In this document: positions 11,601-31,067 of the stretch, piece after piece
How positions within the stretch are numbered: the stretch's first letter is position 1
How the letters are laid out: every line of letters starts with the position of its first letter
Source: Corallochytrium limacisporum Hawaii
Lineage: Eukaryota > Protista > Pluriformea
Assembly (NCBI GenBank): GCA_002811645.1
Contig: PDIP01000111.1
Span: 44,739 to 91,465 of the forward strand
Length of the DNA: 46,727 nucleotides
Direction: 5' to 3'
Program-made: the position numbers and the translations under genes
Notes under the pieces: model-generated
The model's database searches: none
Told to the model about the DNA's origin: nothing
What the model saw: the letters and a program-made list of their open reading frames with translations, nothing else

Positions 11601-12200
11601 GTTCTCGTGCACCACCACGTCGCAGAGCTGGCATCGCAAGATGCTGCGATTTAAGAAGAGCTGCTTAGCGCTGTGCAAGGATTTGGCGCACACCTGGCAA
11701 TTGCCTGTGGCACTACTGTCGGTGACGAACGTGTGGACCCGCGCATCCCGGTTGGGATATCCGCTCTGTGATCCATTCTCTTCCAAACCACTGCTGCCGT
11801 CGCTGCCTGCAGAGGGTCGGGCCTTGTCGGATAGGCTGGCATTGAAATTGCGCCCGTCATGTTCCTGGGATCCGTCCGACGACTTGTCTCGTCGGTGTGA
11901 CATTATTCCGAGAATGCCTCCCGAGTTCGTCTGACTTACTGTTCCCGACCCTTCCATCTCGCCTTCTTGTGCAAATCTGTCCTTGTCCTTTGAGTTGCCC
12001 GAGATTAGGGTCTCCGCGCGCCGTCGCAAGCCTTTGAAGACAGATTTGCTGGAGTCATGGCCGCTGCTGTCTGATTTGCCGTGTCCACCTGGGCTACCGC
12101 TGCTGGGAGGATCTCCCAGTGGCGGAATCTCTAAGTCATCCTCAGACAATTTATCCCGCGTAAGCCGCCGACTATTGGCTGGCCGTGTGGCTGTGGACAT
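8661..12200 (-). CDS. Ras-family guanine nucleotide exchange factor (CDC25 domain) with N-terminal C1 zinc finger
   Basis: C1 pattern H-x11-C-x2-C...C-x2-C-x4-H-x2-C-x6-C. CDC25 domain motifs APNIMAFIGRFNEI, LQNFNSMKAIVAGLQSSPVHRLKKTW and PPIIPFLGMFLTDI. caccATG start context. Confidence 0.9.
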   Translation of the reverse strand: MSTATRPANSRRLTRDKLSEDDLEIPPLGDPPSSGSPGGHGKSDSSGHDSSKSVFKGLRRRAETLISGNSKDKDRFAQEGEMEGSGTVSQTNSGGILGIMSHRRDKSSDGSQEHDGRNFNASLSDKARPSAGSDGSSGLEENGSQSGYPNRDARVHTFVTDSSATGNCQVCAKSLHSAKQLFLNRSILRCQLCDVVVHENCRNSLGRCLQRPGAYETLDSGRYIKRPTSGGVRGSQSDEDSALHGTLVEVQAEKPQYNTSARVTKTSIYLIQHRFEVELANPSLKDPLYIKAIKAFKEDFLTQAWKYVNANSRDRHFVVKYFEQVFKKTLINSVTTSKGKESGLKELLSSDSGSQVSKTAADSGDDADGGARANGKSSRNQPSEETKQRVRDAYHHFRNCFHDYTYYGALDVEFDRFVAKDVAQQFTVTDSRLFVAIREQEYRNAWWTKKDKYERAPNIMAFIGRFNEITLFVMTKVLERPNAKDRARIIEHWIQIAIECGGLQNFNSMKAIVAGLQSSPVHRLKKTWPLVSAKAKANLDRIAEQLSEDQNSAKLRELVSEAKPPIIPFLGMFLTDIVYVYTALAGKEEECKKKIDVIVNQILHMQSIPFYVEPIFALNNYLDNLWFEDEDSAWQLSLQQEPKMNAQDVKKQQIVEKEERGVLDEGELLRTASLAQVEDLLSQHQTRIEILHNEINQLKGTQGPYAKKRFDAKSEELWQALQTVTGLKRVARKLQNEEEAGQKNSRRESLQRRFSESENGDGESQRSTGTESLRLSKPDINTIPASPDTVTGVRESPGTPSTPPARMGGGAPYPSPGGNSQNQEQAKALADAASGWVKHRRSSSVDHGTSSRSRAATLNSSSGVPKIGAGMRSAFADSGPSSLQNSFRGNSAAGAGEGGPAPTGSETSIAEDEHENDYDGNDEGFAIGGQSIGTRRVVDGWQGQHRMSDEEQSAATQWQAKTARMPPMPRPPIAARPHTAYASDGGGNYGTSGAVAPVRPRRNVSASPQRSPSADSSELYNNPISSMKPRHGRSATVSHRPLTSSMSVDSTNEVPVDLGALRTGKATPVIPPRPVISQQASASGRAYAAANAQRPAFPNEQEFSDGWIDDEDWAQALALADNEHQIRRALDLADNMYRLCNEMSEPEAATLQQMANEQASLLQAVVQAMSRGRESQQHG

Positions 12201-12876
12201 GGTGTAGCCTAAACTTTGAACTATCGTAATTCCCTATGCACTCGGCAATGTGCGGAGTTTACATGTTGCTTCTGTCTGTTATTTCTGTGCGCTGTAGCCA
12301 GTCACTGCTTTGTAGAATCTGTCGTGTATTTGTAAAGTGTATATGGCCACAACACCCCGGTCACTGTTTTTTCAACTCAAGTTCTAATCATTTTAGGAAC
12401 ATCATTTGGCATTCTTAGTTTTGTGGTTGTGCGTAGGGGCTCTCGTACCTTTACCAGGACGACTGATTAGCAAACCCAACTAGAACACCGCCGCACCATT
12501 ATCTCAATATTCTGCATGGAAAGGTGTCATTCCCTTTAATGTCTTTGTCACGCGTACTTCCGCCCAAAGAATCCAGGAGAGCACAACCCCATTGAGGCAT
12601 TGGCGCACACAACCCCATTAATGTTTCCAAAAGAATCCCCATTTTTCTGATGCTCCCGACCCCTGGCTTTCGCCTTCGGCGCCATTTCCTGATGAAAAAA
12701 TCGGTGTGTGGCTGGGTCGCAAGGTTGGGAAGAGAGAGAGAGAGCGCGAGGACGAAGGAGGAAAAAAGGAAAAGAGTAGGGCACAAGTGTGTGTGTGGGG
12801 GGGGGGGGCTAATGAGTTACACCGGAAAAAGTTAACCGGCTCAACACCACCCCCTCTCTCTCCTTTCTTCCCTAAC

Positions 12877-13024
12877 CTCTCTCTCTATCTCTCTCTCTCT
12901 CTCGCTCGCTGCTGAACACCGACCCGAGCGAAGCAGGGAAGGGGGGAGAGAGAGAGGCACAGCGAGACCCTCCCTACCCCGTGACAATTTTTTCCCTCTC
13001 TCTCTCTCTCTTTCTCTCTCTCTC
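12877..13024. repeat. (CT)n/(GA)n microsatellite cluster
   Basis: CT tracts at ~12877-12903 and ~12997-13024, GA tract at ~12945-12956. Confidence 0.9.
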
Positions 13025-13170
13025 CTTTTTTTTGTCATTTTTTTCTCTCACTCGTTCATTTTTCGCTTTTTGTTGGGTCTCTATCGCTTTTTTTGCTTTT
13101 GTGTATGTCTCTCTCCCTCCCTCGGTCCCCCCCTTTTTTTCGGCTGATGGCTTTCTCCGTTCCCCCCCCC

Positions 13171-13815
13171 NNNNNNNNNNNNNNNNNNNNNNNNNNNNNN
13201 NNNNNNNNNNNNNNNNNNNNNNNNNNNNNNNNNNNNNNNNNNNNNNNNNNNNNNNNNNNNNNNNNNNNNNNNNNNNNNNNNNNNNNNNNNNNNNNNNNNN
13301 NNNNNNNNNNNNNNNNNNNNNNNNNNNNNNNNNNNNNNNNNNNNNNNNNNNNNNNNNNNNNNNNNNNNNNNNNNNNNNNNNNNNNNNNNNNNNNNNNNNN
13401 NNNNNNNNNNNNNNNNNNNNNNNNNNNNNNNNNNNNNNNNNNNNNNNNNNNNNNNNNNNNNNNNNNNNNNNNNNNNNNNNNNNNNNNNNNNNNNNNNNNN
13501 NNNNNNNNNNNNNNNNNNNNNNNNNNNNNNNNNNNNNNNNNNNNNNNNNNNNNNNNNNNNNNNNNNNNNNNNNNNNNNNNNNNNNNNNNNNNNNNNNNNN
13601 NNNNNNNNNNNNNNNNNNNNNNNNNNNNNNNNNNNNNNNNNNNNNNNNNNNNNNNNNNNNNNNNNNNNNNNNNNNNNNNNNNNNNNNNNNNNNNNNNNNN
13701 NNNNNNNNNNNNNNNNNNNNNNNNNNNNNNNNNNNNNNNNNNNNNNNNNNNNNNNNNNNNNNNNNNNNNNNNNNNNNNNNNNNNNNNNNNNNNNNNNNNN
13801 NNNNNNNNNNNNNNN
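13171..13815. other. Assembly gap (645 N)
   Basis: Run of N flanked by C-rich tracts. Confidence 1.
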
Positions 13816-14070
13816 CACCCCCCTTTCTCCCCTCCTCCCCTCCCCCTTCCCTCTCTTCCTCGCTTGCGCTCTCTGCGTGCTTTTGCCCTCGGAGGTGGCC
13901 CACCACCCCAAAAATTTTGATGGCGAAAGGGCTGCCCGGGGAAGGGAGCGGGGGGGGGGGACAAAACAGAAAAAAAAAGACCAAAGCGGGTAAAAGTCCC
14001 GCAGATTTCGCATAGAAAATGAATCACAACGCAGGGAAAATTCTAAAAAGGAAAAAAAATAGAGGGAGAA

Positions 14071-23252: not shown

Positions 23253-26200
23253 ATGGGGGGTTTTGATCTGCCACAGCGTTTGGCTGTGACTCAGTTTACA
23301 GCCAAACGGTACGACAATGACGCTACCAACGCACAAGGCTTGCCGCTACAGCCTCCGTCAAGCAATGTGGTTGGGCGGGGAACAGATATTGTCATGAAGC
23401 CGTACGACAAGTGTGGTAAACACCCGGGAGGCAAATCTCACTTATTGGAACTGGTGGCCTGCGAACGAGGTTTACATGATCGCGTCTTTGTAGTGCAGGA
23501 GCATAAGGCGCTAGGTGTTGAAGACATCTGGAACCGAGAGGATCTTAACAGAGTGCAAGTTGTTCGTGAGACGGTCATGGCCTTATGCCAGATGCAGCGG
23601 CAAAGAGGACTGTCGAATCCACACGGTCAGTTGACCCTGGAGTGTATTCGGATACGGACCAATGGGTCCAACACTCCAGATTCGTGCGATCTCTCCAAGG
23701 CAAGAGTGAAGCTGAGCAACTGGTACCTGAGTGCCATTGTCGACCAAGGGGACGATGTTGACCACCCGATGGGCGAGATGGCCTATTGGTCGCCAGAGCG
23801 TCTCGCACTCGCTGCTGGTCAGCGGATGCGACAGGTAGGGGCAATGCTGCCAGATGAGAGCACTCAGATCACAGACTCTGAAGACGGTGTGAAGAAGCAG
23901 CTGCCACCATGGTCCAATCATTTCATCAGTCACGCGGATGATGCTTTTGCCCTTGGTGTGGTCACCCTGGAGATTGCGCTTCGCAAGAAAATGCCTAGGG
24001 ACAATCTTGCTGCCTGCTTTGATCGTCTATCCTGTACTTCCACGGAAGCCATGCTGGCCAGTCTGCTACGCATGCTGGGTAATGCAACCACCGCGGCTGT
24101 AGCAGTTGGTCTAGGCGTCCCGGATGGTGATGCGGCACTGCTCTCTTTTCTGGATGCGTGTTTACATCCACACCCCCGCCAAAGGGCGGCCGTAGCAGAT
24201 CTCATAGCTCATCCGTTTCTGTCCGACGGTTCAAGTGCCAGTGGCGACTGTGGATTGGCACTCCGAAGCGAAGACACCGTTCCGACTCCGGTGAACGACA
24301 ACGATGAACCGTCTCTGCTGGAGCTCAGGGCCCTCTTTCATCTCTGGCAGATCACATCCGGGGGAGATCTGTGGACCCAAGTGACTCAGGGTACAGGCAT
24401 CCACGCGTTACCTCCAGCAAACGCTGTACCAGCCATGATTACACGAGAGTCGGTTATGCTTGGCACGAATCGGGACAGAAGCGCCCTCTTTGATGGGAGG
24501 TGGTGGGATCTTAGCCTGATGAAAGTACGGCAGCTCTTTAAGGCTACGCTCGATAAAGCCGGGATCACCACAAATTCCGTGTTCACACGCAACCCATTGC
24601 TTGTTCTTAACGGTGCCAAAGCGCGTTTAAACAAAGGATTCAGTGCACCCATGCTCGGCAGCCCAGATGATATGATCCACACTGAAACCTTTACCAAGCA
24701 AATATCTCCTAAGGCTGTGGAAATGCATGTTTCTGCTGACAGCGAAATGCCCGTGGCAATCAAGGAAGCAAATGCCGAGTACCAGATGAATCGCATTGCC
24801 ATTTTCAGGCAGCTTCTGCACGGTCTCCCTGCCTCCGTCAAGCAGTTGCGGCGTGAAGCACGTCGCGATATTCCCCCTCTCCTGCGCAACGAAGTCTGGT
24901 ACGCACTGCTGCGCTACTCGCCACGGAGTGAGTCTGCCGTCGCCAATTTCACACCCCGAAGCTCTGAGAAGCAGGTTGAGGAACGGAAAACCCATCGATC
25001 GTCGGACATGCAGAGCAGTCGCTATACGGAGGAGTACATGCGTCTGGATCGTTTGCTAGCGGCAGATATAGACCACCAGATCGAGGTTGACATCCCTCGG
25101 TGTCACCAGTACGAGACGCTGCTGTCCGCTACCCTGGGACGGGAAAAACTTCGGTGCGTGCTTAAAAGCTGGAGCCGTTTCCATGAAGAGGCGAAGATGG
25201 TATATTGGCAGGGCATTGACTCCATTTCGGCCCCCTTTGTTTGCCTCAACTACGGCCATACAGATCGAGCGTTTGCGTGTCTCGAATTGTTCATTCAGAA
25301 GTACCTGCCGGGCTTCTTCCAGGCATCGAATAGTGACCGTATCCAACTATACTTGGTCGGTCTGCGCAATGTCATGGCCTTCCACAGCCCTACACTACAC
25401 AACCACATGATGAGCATCGAGTTTGGACCCGACCTCTTCGCCATCCCTTGGTTACTTACCATGTTCACGCACATTTTTCCACTGCAACGCATCTACCATT
25501 TGTGGGACACTCTGCTGGTCAGTGATAGCCACTGGCCCATTCACTTGGCCTTTGCGATTCTTGAGCAAATGCAAGGTTTGATCTCCGGAGCTGGCTTCAA
25601 CGAATGTATCCTGATCTTCTCCGACCTCCCGGAAGCTGACCTGCAGACGTCCACACGTCGCGCTACGGATCTAAATCGCTTGACCCCGCCGTCCCTGAGC
25701 ATTCCGCCCCTAGTCCAATTGCCAATCATGAAGGCGGATGGTACCAAGGCAATCGAGGACGACCGGTTCCGTATACACACCCTCAAGATGGAACCGCTGG
25801 GTCGCATCAGTGCCGAAGACCTGGCACATCTGCTGCACTACACCCAGGCCTCCAAAGCGGAGCAACGAGCAATCGCCAAGACCTTCTCTGGTCACGATGA
25901 TGGCGACACTGTACAATCACACTGGTTCATGGCCCCACTACTGTGCTTCGATTGTCGACCACTTGTCGAATCTCTGGACGACCACCTGCCCCACTCCGTG
26001 CTGATTGCGTCCTTCCATGCTTCAGAATTGCCACTCTTCTACAGAAGCTACATGGAAACATATCGTACATCGCCCTTAGTGGTCCTGTACGGCACATCCG
26101 TGGAACAGATCACGCCGTATGCAGAGGCGTTGCTGACCAAGAATGTACCGGGACTGACGACGTTCATTGAGCCTACAGAGTCTGTATCAGCGGAGCGTGA

Positions 26201-26354
26201 ACTCCCATATTGCGACTGCGGTGCAAGTCAACAGTGGATCGTCCCCATGCCGCAACCGGAGCCAACAAAGGAACAGCAGAAACATGGCATCAACCCCGAA
26301 CCCGTCCCGCCCAGCGAGATCAGCGCGTGTGTTCAATTTAGGCGGCCCTCCTAG
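23253..26354 (+). CDS. TBCK: TBC domain-containing protein kinase-like protein (pseudokinase + TBC RabGAP + rhodanese-like)
   Basis: TBCK-type N-terminus (GLPLQPPSSNVVGR...RGLHDRVFVVQEH) and a degenerate kinase lacking HRD/DFG. TBC catalytic fingers QIEVDIPRCHQY and YWQG, plus PDLFAIPWLLTMFTH. C-terminal FDCRP...HLPHS rhodanese-like part. Confidence 0.93.
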   Translation: MGGFDLPQRLAVTQFTAKRYDNDATNAQGLPLQPPSSNVVGRGTDIVMKPYDKCGKHPGGKSHLLELVACERGLHDRVFVVQEHKALGVEDIWNREDLNRVQVVRETVMALCQMQRQRGLSNPHGQLTLECIRIRTNGSNTPDSCDLSKARVKLSNWYLSAIVDQGDDVDHPMGEMAYWSPERLALAAGQRMRQVGAMLPDESTQITDSEDGVKKQLPPWSNHFISHADDAFALGVVTLEIALRKKMPRDNLAACFDRLSCTSTEAMLASLLRMLGNATTAAVAVGLGVPDGDAALLSFLDACLHPHPRQRAAVADLIAHPFLSDGSSASGDCGLALRSEDTVPTPVNDNDEPSLLELRALFHLWQITSGGDLWTQVTQGTGIHALPPANAVPAMITRESVMLGTNRDRSALFDGRWWDLSLMKVRQLFKATLDKAGITTNSVFTRNPLLVLNGAKARLNKGFSAPMLGSPDDMIHTETFTKQISPKAVEMHVSADSEMPVAIKEANAEYQMNRIAIFRQLLHGLPASVKQLRREARRDIPPLLRNEVWYALLRYSPRSESAVANFTPRSSEKQVEERKTHRSSDMQSSRYTEEYMRLDRLLAADIDHQIEVDIPRCHQYETLLSATLGREKLRCVLKSWSRFHEEAKMVYWQGIDSISAPFVCLNYGHTDRAFACLELFIQKYLPGFFQASNSDRIQLYLVGLRNVMAFHSPTLHNHMMSIEFGPDLFAIPWLLTMFTHIFPLQRIYHLWDTLLVSDSHWPIHLAFAILEQMQGLISGAGFNECILIFSDLPEADLQTSTRRATDLNRLTPPSLSIPPLVQLPIMKADGTKAIEDDRFRIHTLKMEPLGRISAEDLAHLLHYTQASKAEQRAIAKTFSGHDDGDTVQSHWFMAPLLCFDCRPLVESLDDHLPHSVLIASFHASELPLFYRSYMETYRTSPLVVLYGTSVEQITPYAEALLTKNVPGLTTFIEPTESVSAERELPYCDCGASQQWIVPMPQPEPTKEQQKHGINPEPVPPSEISACVQFRRPS

Positions 26355-26444: not shown

Positions 26445-28886
26445 CTACTGTGTGGTCCTGCCGTCTTCGTAGGGATCGACGTACTCATCTGAGCACCAAT
26501 CGTCCGTGAAAGGTACACAACTAATATACCGGCACCATGAGCAAAAATTGGGATTCTGCGTGCTGTAGAAAGCAATGAAGGCAATAGCAAAGACGATAAG
26601 CGCTAATGGAATGGCGATGGCCAGCATGAGCCTCTTCCGACGAGCATCCCATTTGCTGAAGGTCAGGTACGGCAGGAAAATCAAGCCGGTCAAAATGCCC
26701 ATGATCAGACCAAAGACGTGGGCAAAGTTGTCAATCCACGGTAGCAGGCCGATTGCGAGACTGAAGAGCACGAGTAAAAACAGCTTGAAGAACGTGCTCC
26801 ATGGATCCCACAGCATCTGCCATTGCTGGAACAACTCGACAAGGTGCACACCAATGATGCCATAGATGGCCGCACTGGCACCAACGGAAGGCACGTACGG
26901 AATGAATACCGCACTGTAGGCAAACCCACAGACGCTGGACAGCACGTAGATCAGGCCAACGCGCAACCAGCCTGCGGTGCGCTCAATGGGTTCCATGATG
27001 GCCCATTGAATTAGCAAATTGAGACCTAGATGAATGAGACCAGCGTGCAAGAACATCGGGGTGATGAAACGCCACCACTGGTTTGGGTTCTGGGGATCAT
27101 CACTCGAGCCAGCAGTGCCGCAAATATCATCGAGACAATTCACGTCGCGGCAGCTCTCCTGGTCAGAGTGCCACCAACCCCCTGCGAACGAGCAGTCAGA
27201 CTCGTCTGTGGTTACGCAGGTGCCGTAAATGTCAATACAACAAGGCCTGCGACTGATTTCACAGTTTGATGGACACGCACCGCTGCTCCAGACCGCACCA
27301 CAGGCGTCCTCCGTGGCACGGAAGCACGTATTCACCTCCGTACAGCACCCCTCGGGCTCTTCGCGGTTGGCGGCTAGCCAAGCCTGGTAGGCCGTATCTT
27401 TGCGCATGCACAGTGCGTACTTGGCCCCAAATTGGATGAGCGTTTCAGTTGGAGGTCCAATCCAAAAGTTCGGTGCGGTAGTCCTAGTAATGTTGCCCTG
27501 CGTCTCTTGTTTGACTGTAAAGGACGGCGACACAATGCCACCGAAGGCGATCATAACGATCATCATCAGTACTTGAACACAACTGAGCACGATCATGAAA
27601 TACGGCTTGAATTCTGGACGAGTGACGAGCTGTTCCTTGACAAAATTTTCCATGCTCTTGATCTGCATACCACGGTAGAGACGAGATTGTGCGCGTGTAG
27701 TAGGAGCACGGCTTTGGGTATTGCGAGCGCCCCGTTGCCGTCCGGGCGTTTTTACCCCGGCATCGTGTGAAAACCAGTCGACCAAGAGGTACGCACCGTG
27801 AGTGGTGACACGCGTTGAACCCTGAGCACCACCGTACAACAGCTGCGCCCCTTCGATGCTCGGATGCTTCACAGTAGCAGTGTAGACGTAGTCGTTGACC
27901 TTGATGGGTACCAGGAGTTCTGAGTCCTCTTTTGCTATGCTTTGTGTTTCCCAGTCGACATCGTCAACAGTCAAGTTTTTCTCTTTCTTCGATGCACCAC
28001 CCATACCCACTAGAGACATAAGTGAGGCCTTAGAGAAGGTTCGGCTCTTTGCATTATCGCCAATTCTCCTCAGGCTCGCCCGTGACGAAAGTAGACCGCC
28101 TGTGGACCCGAGATTCTGCTGTGATTCAGAGAATAGACGCCGACTATTCAGCATTTGACTATTGCCCATGGGGCCCATGTGTGCAAGACTACGGTTAGAC
28201 CGAGTTGTGAGCGCACCTCGATTGGCCCAGGCCGCAACCTCCTCATCCTCGACCACGCCAAACCATTTGCCGACCTTGCGTCCAATTGTCTCCTTAGAAT
28301 GCGCGTGTTGCATGCCTCGACCACCACTGTCCGGTCGTGAAGGCTTCTCATTCCCCAGTGCAGTAGACCGCATATCTGCATGCCCGTGACCCCCAGTCTC
28401 GCAGATCTCTGTTTCGTCCTCCTCGTAGATCATATCATCTACCGCGGCGGCAGGCTCAGGTGCAGTGGCACGCATCCTGGATAAACCACGTCGGGGACTG
28501 TGCTGAGTACGTGGGGATGGGAATGAGGATGACGGACTGAGCGGTGAGGCACGCCCGACACTGCGTGGGGACGTGACCCCGGAGTGCCAACTCTTTTTGT
28601 CATGACTGTCACTTGCAAGTTCCGAAATAGCTGCCGTACGCCAAGAGTCTAGCACTCGTACAAACTTACGCAAGCCGATAGGGCCCTCCTGACCGTAGAT
28701 CTTCCAGTATTCCTTGGCAGCATTCTTACTCATGGGTACCTCCAGGATTTGCGCACCTTCTTGCACCGCAATTACGAAAGCCGGCTTACCCAGACGGCCC
28801 ACACCGTCAACATCGGCGGCAATGAACACCTGTTTAAGATTCTCCAGCTCGGCGGCTGTGATCCGAAATCCATTCCTGGTTGTCAT
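26445..28886 (-). CDS. RHBDF: iRhom (RHBDF) orthologue with intact GxS...H catalytic dyad and N-terminal EF-hand-like region
   Basis: iRhom hallmarks: cytosolic KWFGV motif, FVKEQL...KPYF, NFWIGP...GAKYALCMR, Cys-rich iRhom homology domain (RPCCI...C...C...CLDDICG), QWWRFITPMFLHAG and GLLPWIDNFAH...LPYLTF. First ATG is at 28886 (aaaccATG); the ORF track start at 28910 is a TTG. Confidence 0.9.
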   Translation of the reverse strand: MTTRNGFRITAAELENLKQVFIAADVDGVGRLGKPAFVIAVQEGAQILEVPMSKNAAKEYWKIYGQEGPIGLRKFVRVLDSWRTAAISELASDSHDKKSWHSGVTSPRSVGRASPLSPSSSFPSPRTQHSPRRGLSRMRATAPEPAAAVDDMIYEEDETEICETGGHGHADMRSTALGNEKPSRPDSGGRGMQHAHSKETIGRKVGKWFGVVEDEEVAAWANRGALTTRSNRSLAHMGPMGNSQMLNSRRLFSESQQNLGSTGGLLSSRASLRRIGDNAKSRTFSKASLMSLVGMGGASKKEKNLTVDDVDWETQSIAKEDSELLVPIKVNDYVYTATVKHPSIEGAQLLYGGAQGSTRVTTHGAYLLVDWFSHDAGVKTPGRQRGARNTQSRAPTTRAQSRLYRGMQIKSMENFVKEQLVTRPEFKPYFMIVLSCVQVLMMIVMIAFGGIVSPSFTVKQETQGNITRTTAPNFWIGPPTETLIQFGAKYALCMRKDTAYQAWLAANREEPEGCCTEVNTCFRATEDACGAVWSSGACPSNCEISRRPCCIDIYGTCVTTDESDCSFAGGWWHSDQESCRDVNCLDDICGTAGSSDDPQNPNQWWRFITPMFLHAGLIHLGLNLLIQWAIMEPIERTAGWLRVGLIYVLSSVCGFAYSAVFIPYVPSVGASAAIYGIIGVHLVELFQQWQMLWDPWSTFFKLFLLVLFSLAIGLLPWIDNFAHVFGLIMGILTGLIFLPYLTFSKWDARRKRLMLAIAIPLALIVFAIAFIAFYSTQNPNFCSWCRYISCVPFTDDWCSDEYVDPYEDGRTTQ

Positions 28887-31067
28887 GGTTTTAAGTGTGC
28901 CTATACTCAAGAATAAATCACAATGTGACTATTTTCACGTTCTTCTGCTAAAGATCGAGTTTTTGGAATCCATCCATTTTTCCATGTGTTCATAACAGAA
29001 ATGTACTAAACCGTGGATCTATTTCTTCTTTAACAATATTGTTTTTGACTCTTCGTGTGTCTTCGCAATTGGTCTCTGCTTGTAGCTTCAACGCTTGGAG
29101 GAGCCTGTCCTTCAGGAAGAGGAGGAACAAGCAGTTGTCAACTGGGTGGTGTCTTAATGCCGTGTACGTGTTTCTTCTCCTTTCATTCATCTTGCACATC
29201 CCACACGGAGAACAAACAACTCGCAGGTCTACTCTTTTATCATTCAGGAAAGAAAACCACCCAATGTCCTACCGACTGGTATGAGATAAGAAGTGACTTT
29301 CCCTGAGCATGGCCTTACCTTTTGCCTTGGGTTTGCTGGGAAAGGGCGAAAATGGCCACAAAGATAACTCAGGCGACCAGTTGAAACCTATCCTGGGGGG
29401 AAAGAGGGGGCCCAGGCCCCAAGGCACCGAATGAAAGGTAGCGAACTACCCGCAACAACCGTTGCTAAAACCCTTGCAGAAAGCGACATGCTCCAGTCAG
29501 ATTGGACAGTTGCCCGCCGTGTTTTCCGTAAGCCAACCCAGCGATTCAAAACATGATTATGAAGGGTGCATTTTGTCGTAACAGAATCACTGCTTCTTGA
29601 TGCTGCCAGTTAAATGTTTTTTTGTTGTTGGTAGGGCCTGGATAGTGATTGACCATACAAGTGGGAAAGACAAGCAGGGCTGGACATCATGTATTTCCTC
29701 TCAGTAGGTCGATGCCATAGTGTGGTGAGAGAGTGTGCAGCTGGTTGTGCTGCACTTCCAACATTCCTGTCAAAAGCTGCTAGACGATGATCTGGTCAAT
29801 CGATCTGTTCGTGTGAAACTGTACGGGATGGTGGTGGTGCTGGTTTAAACTCAAAACAGACCCACAGTCGAGTGGCACGAAAGGGGCCAGAGCAAGCCCA
29901 AAGGAGGGTTTTCGTCAAGCGCGGGGCTCCTTGGCGACGGAGCCCGTGAGAAGGATGGGTGGAGGAGGAAGGGCCGGTGGACTGTGGTGGGCCCGATAGA
30001 AAATGTGCTGAGACGTTTGAGTATAGTTTTTCCTGAACGCAAAAGGGTGCCAGGCTGGAAAAATATACTGCAGAGTCAGCGACTAATTCCTTAGCGGTGT
30101 AGAGGGGGTTTGTCCTCGGTTTGCCCCCCCCCCCCAAGGGAGGACGGGCGGCTTGCAGCCCAAAATTTCCCCTGAGGAGACTACGGGACCTAGCAACCGG
30201 GACAGAGAGTGGTTCATTCACTATAGAGAGGTGGCTGTTCATTGAGAGAACCTTAGCGCGACCACTTTTTCGCGTTCTAATTGGACGGCAACCACAGGCC
30301 CATCGGAGGAATAGTTGATGCCAGCAAGACAGGACAGCCGCAATTGACCCTACAGAAGGAAATTGTCAGTACTGCTCGTGGATCTTGAGAGTGGAACCGT
30401 GTTAATTGGTTACTTGTTTGTTGAGTGTACCTCTACATTCTTTCTCGGTGAGAGGCTGCGTAAACGACCCGTACTATTGCGACGAATATGGGCGACAGCG
30501 CAGATGCTACAGTGTGCTGGGTAGACCTGCTGCTTTTGGGAAGGCGGGTTTTGCGGAGGTTTCCACCATGCTAAGGCAGAGAAACATGTTTTCAATACCA
30601 CTACCCTACCCATGCAGGGAAGACCGATCTAGATGTAACGATGCAATCATCAGAGGACTGGTCTTCGATCCGACTCACCCTGCTTGCATTTAGCGACAAC
30701 CATATGTTTTCTCAATGTCAAACCAAGGACTTAGCCACATGCTTCAACGACTACTACTTGATGTATCAGGTACGGTCCTGGGTTACAATATACCGTCCAC
30801 TTCATGACTAGTTGGTTCAGTATTCAATGACCCCTAACAACATCATTAACTAGACTAGATGCCCAAGGGGTATGATTCAAGCCCCGGATAGGATTCGTCT
30901 AAGGCCTTCCAATAGGATCCACGACACCCATGCAGCAGACAAATCAAATGATCTTGGATATGTTATTTGCTTATTTTTTATTTCTTCTATGCTGTTCTTG
31001 GTGTTTTCTTTTCGATGCATTGACATTTTGGTACATGGTCCTGCGAGGATCGTTTCGCTCAAATCTC

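Follow-up and report, generated by a model that had tools for sequence, protein, structure and literature searches.

The window analyzed here is a stretch of 46,727 nucleotides from Corallochytrium limacisporum Hawaii (assembly GCA_002811645.1, contig PDIP01000111.1, positions 44,739 to 91,465 of the forward strand). At 26445-28886 on its minus strand lies a gene for a rhomboid protein with the domain layout of the animal iRhoms, including a luminal iRhom homology domain (IRHD). iRhoms are textbook pseudoenzymes. In animals they act as ADAM17 cofactors or as adaptors in endoplasmic reticulum-associated degradation (ERAD). Their medical importance lies in the fact that ADAM17, by which TNF and EGFR ligands are released, requires them as partners. 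The Corallochytrium protein is predicted to be an active intramembrane serine protease of the secretory pathway, with a probability of about 0.7. We favor this reading because the catalytic set is complete, a proline before the serine is absent, no other secretory rhomboid was found in the genome, ERAD is covered by Derlins and the core is strongly conserved. The location in the secretory pathway is presumed.

Catalytic Site of the Corallochytrium Rhomboid

All six catalytic and structural signatures of rhomboids were found in the Corallochytrium protein (Table 1). An earlier note on this DNA, made from its letters alone, had proposed a candidate competent iRhom from a serine in transmembrane helix (TM) 4 and a histidine in TM6. 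Both codons were found by script where that note had placed them, AGT encoding Ser671 in VGASAA and CAC encoding His723, the last residue of GLLPWIDNFAH (residues 713-723). The proposal now covers the whole catalytic set, as WR, His614/His619/Asn623 and AHxxGxxxG (AHVFGLIMG in Corallochytrium) are also kept, while activity itself stays a prediction. Ser671 stands in the context GAS, with Ala670 and not a proline before it. A proline before the serine suffices alone to inactivate rhomboids (Zettl et al., 2011; PMC3149277). Over the best 150 relatives (see below) Ser671 and His723 aligned with the catalytic positions.

The mechanism we propose would have Ser671, at the beginning of TM4, as nucleophile and His723 of TM6 as general base, with an oxyanion hole made by His619 and Asn623 of TM2 and a WR loop bracing the core as it does in GlpG and Rhomboid-1. 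The substrates would be single-pass membrane proteins, cut in or near their transmembrane segment. The IRHD might serve on the luminal side as a surface to which the ectodomain of a substrate or partner docks, and regulation could act through the cytosolic tail of approximately 430 residues.

Domain Layout and Predicted Fold

The gene is a single unbroken open reading frame (ORF) of 813 codons from the first ATG, according to the ORF list and its translation. Upstream of this ATG there is an in-frame TTG 8 codons away, and stop codons are found farther out. A Pfam scan of the full protein identified the Rhomboid domain alone (PF01694, residues 602-739, E 6e-38, 130.7 bits against a cut-off of 22.6). 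When all PDB sequences were searched by phmmer the best matches were human iRhom1 and iRhom2 (E 1e-76 to 2e-72); TM1, the luminal Cys-rich domain and the core were all covered by the two matching stretches, whereas the match to GlpG was far weaker (E 7e-07). The GPAGS of the human iRhoms corresponds to GASAA in the Corallochytrium protein. A word search of 5.8 billion proteins gave 1198 matches, the top ones all being animal RHBDF1/2 with 30-38% identity over about 400 residues. Judged by these matches, the likeness to iRhoms and rhomboids is no chance match.

All 14 cysteines of the Corallochytrium IRHD (residues 465-595) align with cysteines of mouse iRhom1 and of the amphioxus and sea-urchin iRhoms. 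Across 48 family members 10 of the 14 cysteine columns were invariant and 3 more nearly so. An AlphaFold2 model of residues 395-813, built from a 48-sequence alignment, had a mean predicted local distance difference test (pLDDT) score of 91.2 and a predicted template modeling score (pTM) of 0.88. It contains seven long helices, and the TM4 helix begins exactly at Ser671, as in GlpG. Foldseek placed the model on human iRhom2 in the ADAM17 complex (8snl_B) with a TMq of 0.85 and on iRhom1 with 0.79-0.81, while the core compared to GlpG gave a TMt of about 0.6. The iRhom architecture that the earlier note had read from the sequence was therefore borne out by an IRHD with 14 of 14 cysteines, seven helices, a long tail, the TM6 motif and a fold close to that of iRhom2.

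The order of parts (tail, TM1, IRHD, core, TM7, luminal Cys tail) is the same as in the animal iRhoms RHBDF1/iRhom1, RHBDF2/iRhom2 and Drosophila Rhomboid-5, and the LLPWIDNFAH of TM6 is nearly identical. The Corallochytrium protein differs from them in having GAS instead of GPx, Asn instead of Ser, Thr or Val in TM2, and WR instead of YR. It also comes from a unicellular organism, lacks a detectable iRhom1-2_N domain, and has a compact IRHD without the insert of approximately 60 residues seen in animal iRhoms. With the active secretase-type rhomboids (Drosophila Rhomboid-1 and RHBDL1-3, with GlpG as structural reference) it has in common the Ser/His dyad, the TM2 HxxxN, the WR of loop L1 and the TM6 GxxxG, and a seventh helix is also present in the eukaryotic secretase-A rhomboids. 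It deviates from this group by the domain of approximately 130 residues and 14 cysteines in the loop between TM1 and TM2, where the secretase-type proteins have a short L1, and by an Ala instead of a Gly after the serine. The C-terminal cysteine motif CxxCxYxxCxP...C is common to IRHD rhomboids and related rhomboids with seven TMs, and it is shared by the nearest relatives lacking an IRHD, a chytrid protein among them.

Table 1. Features of the IRHD rhomboid gene, in positions of the window, and the ADAM10/17-family gene found elsewhere in the assembly.
Feature	Position	Strand	Basis
IRHD rhomboid coding sequence, complete, single exon, 813 residues and stop codon	26445..28886	-	ORF and translation; Pfam PF01694 E 6e-38; best PDB matches human iRhom1/2
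Cytosolic N-terminal tail, residues 1-428, mostly low-complexity	27603..28886	-	no Pfam family at E<=10
WFGV motif, residues 208-211, followed by acidic run and Trp	28254..28265	-	scripted coordinates
TM1, about residues 429-450	27537..27602	-	AlphaFold2 helix (model residues 35-55, pLDDT >90); aligns with TM1 of human iRhom1/2
Luminal IRHD, about residues 465-595, 14 Cys	27102..27494	-	cysteine alignment; model fit to 8snl_B
WR motif of loop L1, Trp605-Arg606	27069..27074	-	scripted motif check; YR in animal iRhoms
TM2 HxxxxHxxxN (His614, His619, Asn623)	27018..27047	-	oxyanion-hole residues of active rhomboids
TM4 start VGASAAI, candidate nucleophile Ser671 (AGT, 26874-26876)	26865..26885	-	aligns with GPAGS of human iRhom1/2
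TM6 motif GLLPWIDNFAHVFGLIMG, candidate general base His723 (CAC, 26718-26720), AHxxGxxxG	26697..26750	-	scripted check; PDB alignment
TM7 (about residues 745-775) and luminal C-terminal tail with CxxCxYxxCxP...C	26448..26654	-	model helix 351-381
ADAM10/17-family gene	G000:C278:63213-66446 (L005:544-2994)	-	domain and PDB matches

Cytosolic Tail and the WFGV Motif

No Pfam family was detected in the cytosolic tail at E<=10, and this includes PF12595 (iRhom1-2_N), which is found at 4.6e-103 in mouse iRhom1. The first 40 residues look EF-hand-like, and no Pfam EF-hand was detected there at the same threshold. A motif of the type [WF]FG[VIL] followed by acidic residues was found in the tails of the Corallochytrium, Capsaspora and Creolimax proteins, in 6 of 7 proteins of one choanoflagellate group and in 8 of 13 animal iRhoms. 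It was seen in three Salpingoeca species, and in none of the 13 IRHD proteins from outside Holozoa.

The motif region of Corallochytrium aligned pairwise with that of Creolimax at E 8e-9, while the motif segment reached only E 0.088 against Capsaspora. No alignment to mouse iRhom1 was obtained for the region by pairwise BLASTP. With a hidden Markov model built from the animal motif windows, Capsaspora scored 14.7 bits, Creolimax 11.9 bits and Corallochytrium 1.3 bits, a score reached by 16 of 2000 shuffles. The WFGV signature claimed in the earlier note is thus present in Corallochytrium, but it matches the animal profile poorly. The WFGV-acidic motif is probably a holozoan feature common to iRhoms, and the link of the Corallochytrium motif to that of animals would be an indirect one.

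Distribution of IRHD Rhomboids

When 1.84 billion cluster representatives were searched exhaustively by HMMER, 438 proteins were identified at E<=1e-30. The catalytic positions and the IRHD cysteines were tabulated for the best 150 of these, and names were looked up for 30. A complete catalytic set together with an IRHD was found in CFRG2740T1 of Creolimax fragrantissima, in protein P0014 of the choanoflagellate Acanthoeca spectabilis (EukProt EP00035_P004527), in proteins of Amorphochlora amoebiformis, a chlorarachniophyte of the Rhizaria, located on a genomic contig of 398 kb, and in proteins of the centrohelid Pterocystis. Similar proteins in other unicellular holozoans had been anticipated in the earlier note. 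Creolimax and Acanthoeca conform to this, and the remaining cases extend the family beyond Holozoa. A profile search of the active clade outside Holozoa gave mostly transcriptome and metagenome proteins, and no further named organisms were found for that clade. The Acanthoeca protein carries an SH2 domain in its cytosolic tail (Pfam E 5.8e-12), which would tie an intramembrane protease to phosphotyrosine signaling.

Among animals, a protein of 490 residues from Acropora (P0171/P0237; A. millepora, A. muricata, A. palmata XP_029189340.2 and others) was found to have the full set (GASG, His and HxxxN) and an IRHD. The NCBI name of this protein, "inactive rhomboid protein 2-like," is probably wrong in view of its sequence, and cnidarians appear to keep an active-type IRHD rhomboid alongside canonical iRhoms. 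Labels of this kind were found in our survey to be given to proteins with intact sites. In general, the public sequences of the relatives are unannotated or misnamed (hypothetical, "Peptidase S54 domain-containing" or "inactive").

Other members kept the IRHD and lost the serine. This was the case for CAOG_00981 of Capsaspora (GGT), PTSG_07830 of Salpingoeca rosetta (GAN) and proteins of S. helianthica and S. infusionum. The IRHD rhomboids of protists and early animals (Creolimax, Capsaspora, S. rosetta, Acanthoeca, Acropora, Amorphochlora and Pterocystis) have the compact IRHD and the core in common with Corallochytrium, at 38-42% identity, whereas those of Capsaspora and S. rosetta and several other choanoflagellate proteins differ from it by the absence of the serine. 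Ctenophore iRhoms (P0046/P0043/P0058/P0077/P0139, the P0046 cluster including the "inactive rhomboid protein 1-like" of Bolinopsis microptera) kept GASG and the TM6 His, but the Asn of TM2 and the Trp of WR were both missing.

A second, divergent IRHD group (support 100/98) was found apart from the canonical iRhoms. It has ten members, including P0158 of Sycon ciliatum and P0218 of Argopecten irradians. Nine of the ten lack the catalytic Ser or His, and P0158 keeps both. The named members, P0158 and P0218, are from animals and are labeled "inactive rhomboid protein 1/2-like." The sequence closest to the Corallochytrium core was P0149 (EukProt, 249 residues), with 55% identity over 208 columns and an intact site; it may mark a closer relative of Corallochytrium.

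Phylogenetic Position

A tree was inferred by IQ-TREE under LG+C20 with posterior mean site frequencies (PMSF) from 78 rows and 405 columns, using representatives of each clade and excluding fragments and one long branch. In this tree 67 rows, comprising 66 IRHD proteins and P0257, in which no IRHD was detected, split from the other 11 non-IRHD rhomboids with a support of 100/94. Animal iRhoms, ctenophores and a choanoflagellate group (Hartaetosiga and Choanoeca) formed a clade (100/99), within which the ctenophores were sister to all remaining animal iRhoms (96/83). The possibility of an ordinary fungal- or plant-type rhomboid was rejected, as the Corallochytrium protein has a complete IRHD.

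The Corallochytrium protein falls in the basal polytomy of the IRHD clade. The other branches of the polytomy are Capsaspora, the Creolimax pair, a group of Acropora, choanoflagellate and animal proteins, a group of protists with Acanthoeca, and the iRhom clade. An alternative tree and the approximately unbiased (AU) test were run under LG+G4, which is less reliable than the site-heterogeneous PMSF model. Under LG+G4 Corallochytrium was sister to the clade of animal, ctenophore and choanoflagellate iRhoms with an SH-like approximate likelihood ratio (SH-aLRT) of 75.9, and a placement beside the non-IRHD rhomboids was not rejected (p-AU 0.77). The earlier note had called the gene an RHBDF orthologue and a candidate ancestor. 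Of this, membership of the IRHD clade held, while orthology was not established; because the position inside the IRHD group is a polytomy, it is neither demonstrated nor rejected.

It is quite conceivable, although we consider it the less probable case, that the gene is not the counterpart of RHBDF and represents an older active IRHD lineage, paralogous to iRhoms, which was inherited by animals (e.g., as the Acropora protein of 490 residues) and has mostly been lost. Such a history is compatible with proteolytic activity. It agrees with the polytomy, in which the active Acropora pair and the active protist clade stand beside Capsaspora, Creolimax and the iRhom clade, with the presence of several IRHD paralogue groups each in choanoflagellates and animals, with the p-AU for a position next to the non-IRHD outgroup, and with the failure to detect PF12595. 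The sister position to the iRhom clade under LG+G4 speaks against it, if only at 75.9, as do the single IRHD gene in the genome and the WFGV-acidic motif, which is shared by animal iRhoms, Capsaspora and Creolimax and was seen in none of the 13 non-holozoan proteins.

Genome Context and a Possible Scaffold Role

Six-frame searches of the 24.1 Mb C. limacisporum assembly were used to ask what other rhomboids and possible clients are encoded; all counts are lower bounds. The Pfam Rhomboid model found two genes in the whole assembly, the IRHD rhomboid and a PARL-like gene. The latter encodes 353 residues with GASGA and HLGG (G000:C25:172456-175872; L002:1420-2481, minus strand). With the rhomboid core of a chytrid secretase-type protein as query, the IRHD rhomboid was the sole match in the assembly, and no IRHD paralogue was found there. 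The IRHD rhomboid is thus the only non-mitochondrial (secretory) rhomboid found in this genome. Three Derlin genes were identified (C233, C132 and C143), and a role as ERAD pseudoprotease is therefore already covered.

The genome was also found to encode an ADAM10/17-family protease of 816 residues with a propeptide, a reprolysin domain, an ADAM10-type Cys-rich domain and a membrane anchor (Table 1). Its best PDB matches were ADAM10 (9e-93) and ADAM17 (8e-59). The known partners of ADAM10 are tetraspanins, not iRhoms. Two more reprolysin-type genes are located on C30 and C257.

We regard it as unlikely that the Corallochytrium protein is mainly or only a scaffold like the animal iRhoms, with TM1, IRHD and tail escorting or regulating a client such as the ADAM10/17-type protease, or passing clients to ERAD. 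Its fold and IRHD are the same as those that hold ADAM17 in the human complex (8snl_B), and a possible client is encoded in the genome, but this ADAM is nearer to ADAM10 with its tetraspanin partners. A scaffold would be viable without catalysis, because the state of the dyad changes at least 9 times on the tree (that of the TM2 Asn at least 5 times), and ctenophore iRhoms retain Ser and His inside an otherwise canonical iRhom clade. However, the serine-keeping proteins of that clade have lost Asn623, His619 and WR, all of which are kept in Corallochytrium. In addition, no second secretory rhomboid came up in the searches to take over proteolysis, and the Pfam iRhom N-terminal domain was not detected.

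Several observations weigh against the prediction of an active protease. The residue after Ser671 is an Ala (GASA), where the usual residue is a Gly (GxSG); among the best 150 relatives G, S or A follow the serine in otherwise intact family members. A kept dyad is no proof of activity in the IRHD family, because ctenophore iRhoms and some choanoflagellate proteins keep Ser and His though the TM2 Asn is lost. In the 66 IRHD proteins the dyad and the TM2 Asn were mostly retained or lost jointly (both kept in 21, neither in 36, mixed in 9), but a phylogenetically independent-pairs test of their co-retention gave a p of about 0.5, with few informative pairs and little power. The finding of a single secretory rhomboid is itself a six-frame lower bound. 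Finally, the two public sequencing runs described below are no more than guessed to be RNA from their pattern of contig coverage.

Origin of the iRhom Design

iRhoms have been described as proteins that "are only found in metazoans" and that carry "an invariant proline" (Zettl et al., 2011; PMC3149277), and the restriction to metazoans is repeated in PMC6451368. Reviews state that iRhoms "evolved new domains from proteolytic ancestors," and a review from 2025 (PMC12615303) adds nothing on iRhom distribution or the proline. Full-text literature searches found no paper on a non-metazoan iRhom or on an IRHD rhomboid with an intact site, with earlier mention possible in subscription reviews.

The suggestion in the earlier note that the iRhom architecture predates the loss of catalysis is supported more widely than by Corallochytrium, as intact IRHD rhomboids are present in Creolimax, Acanthoeca, Acropora, Amorphochlora and Pterocystis. 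Because of these similar proteins in other protists, the iRhom design seems to go back beyond the origin of animals and to have preceded the loss of activity. We infer that the family of IRHD rhomboids arose before animals, that its members often have an intact catalytic site, and that animal iRhoms (GPx) are one of several derived lineages lacking the catalytic set, the others being found among choanoflagellates, filastereans and animals. The GASG of ctenophore iRhoms contradicts the invariant proline, and this suggests that inactivation of the proline type took place after the divergence of ctenophores.

A more far-reaching scenario is offered tentatively. The iRhom plan of tail motif, TM1, IRHD, core and TM7 would have its origin in a functioning protease that predates animals and possibly even Holozoa, with the ancestral IRHD being a luminal exosite for a substrate or partner. 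Catalysis would then have been lost many times independently, in line with the at least 9 state changes on the tree of 66 proteins, and proline-type inactivation would have arisen only after ctenophores had split off. In this scenario Corallochytrium, with its sole secretory rhomboid and a single ADAM10/17-type sheddase, would represent the ancestral condition of one protein that cuts clients and is also the partner of a metalloprotease.

A natural protein that combines the IRHD, the tail motif and the full catalytic set would make it testable what the IRHD did in an active enzyme, whether partner binding came before or after the loss of catalysis, and how many substitutions it takes to get from an active IRHD rhomboid to a scaffold. 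Corallochytrium can be transfected (bioRxiv 10.1101/2020.11.12.379420). The gene is a clean example because it is single copy, encodes the sole secretory rhomboid found and belongs to a tractable organism.

Public Contigs and Neighboring Sequences

Two small public runs from two studies, with 13-14 million letters each, were compared to the window. They were available as contigs only, so strand and transcript ends cannot be read from them. In run X1 a contig of 5855 nucleotides covers exactly two convergent genes, the IRHD rhomboid and its neighbor at 23253-26354, and ends at 29044. The contigs of the other run, X2, end at 28942, and here the depth of the two genes differs by a factor of about five to ten, which looks like RNA. 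The upstream spacer at 29045-30000 was uncovered in both runs, the contigs ending 56-158 nucleotides upstream of the ATG.

The X1 contig comes from another allele or strain. Compared with the window, its ORF carries 5 non-synonymous and 6 synonymous changes, which all lie between residues 24 and 471; the non-synonymous ones and 5 of the synonymous ones are confined to residues 24-440, and residues 472-813 are free of differences. It is very improbable that the ORF has no function, be it as a pseudogene or as an artefact of assembly, as 813 codons are open with every domain in order, neither the 14 IRHD cysteines nor the core motifs show any loss, the AlphaFold2 model is confident, and independent contigs from the two runs match the sequence at 99.5-100% identity.

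The convergent neighbor at 23253-26354 on the plus strand encodes a TBCK-like protein of 1033 residues, which matches the TBC RabGAP domain at E 2.7e-33 and, weakly, a kinase C-lobe. Its stop codon lies 90 bp from that of the rhomboid gene. Since one public contig runs through both convergent genes, overlapping 3' ends are suggested. Elsewhere in the window, the 2-kb bin at 12001-14000 has a G+C content of 0.35, compared to 0.49-0.58 in the remaining bins.

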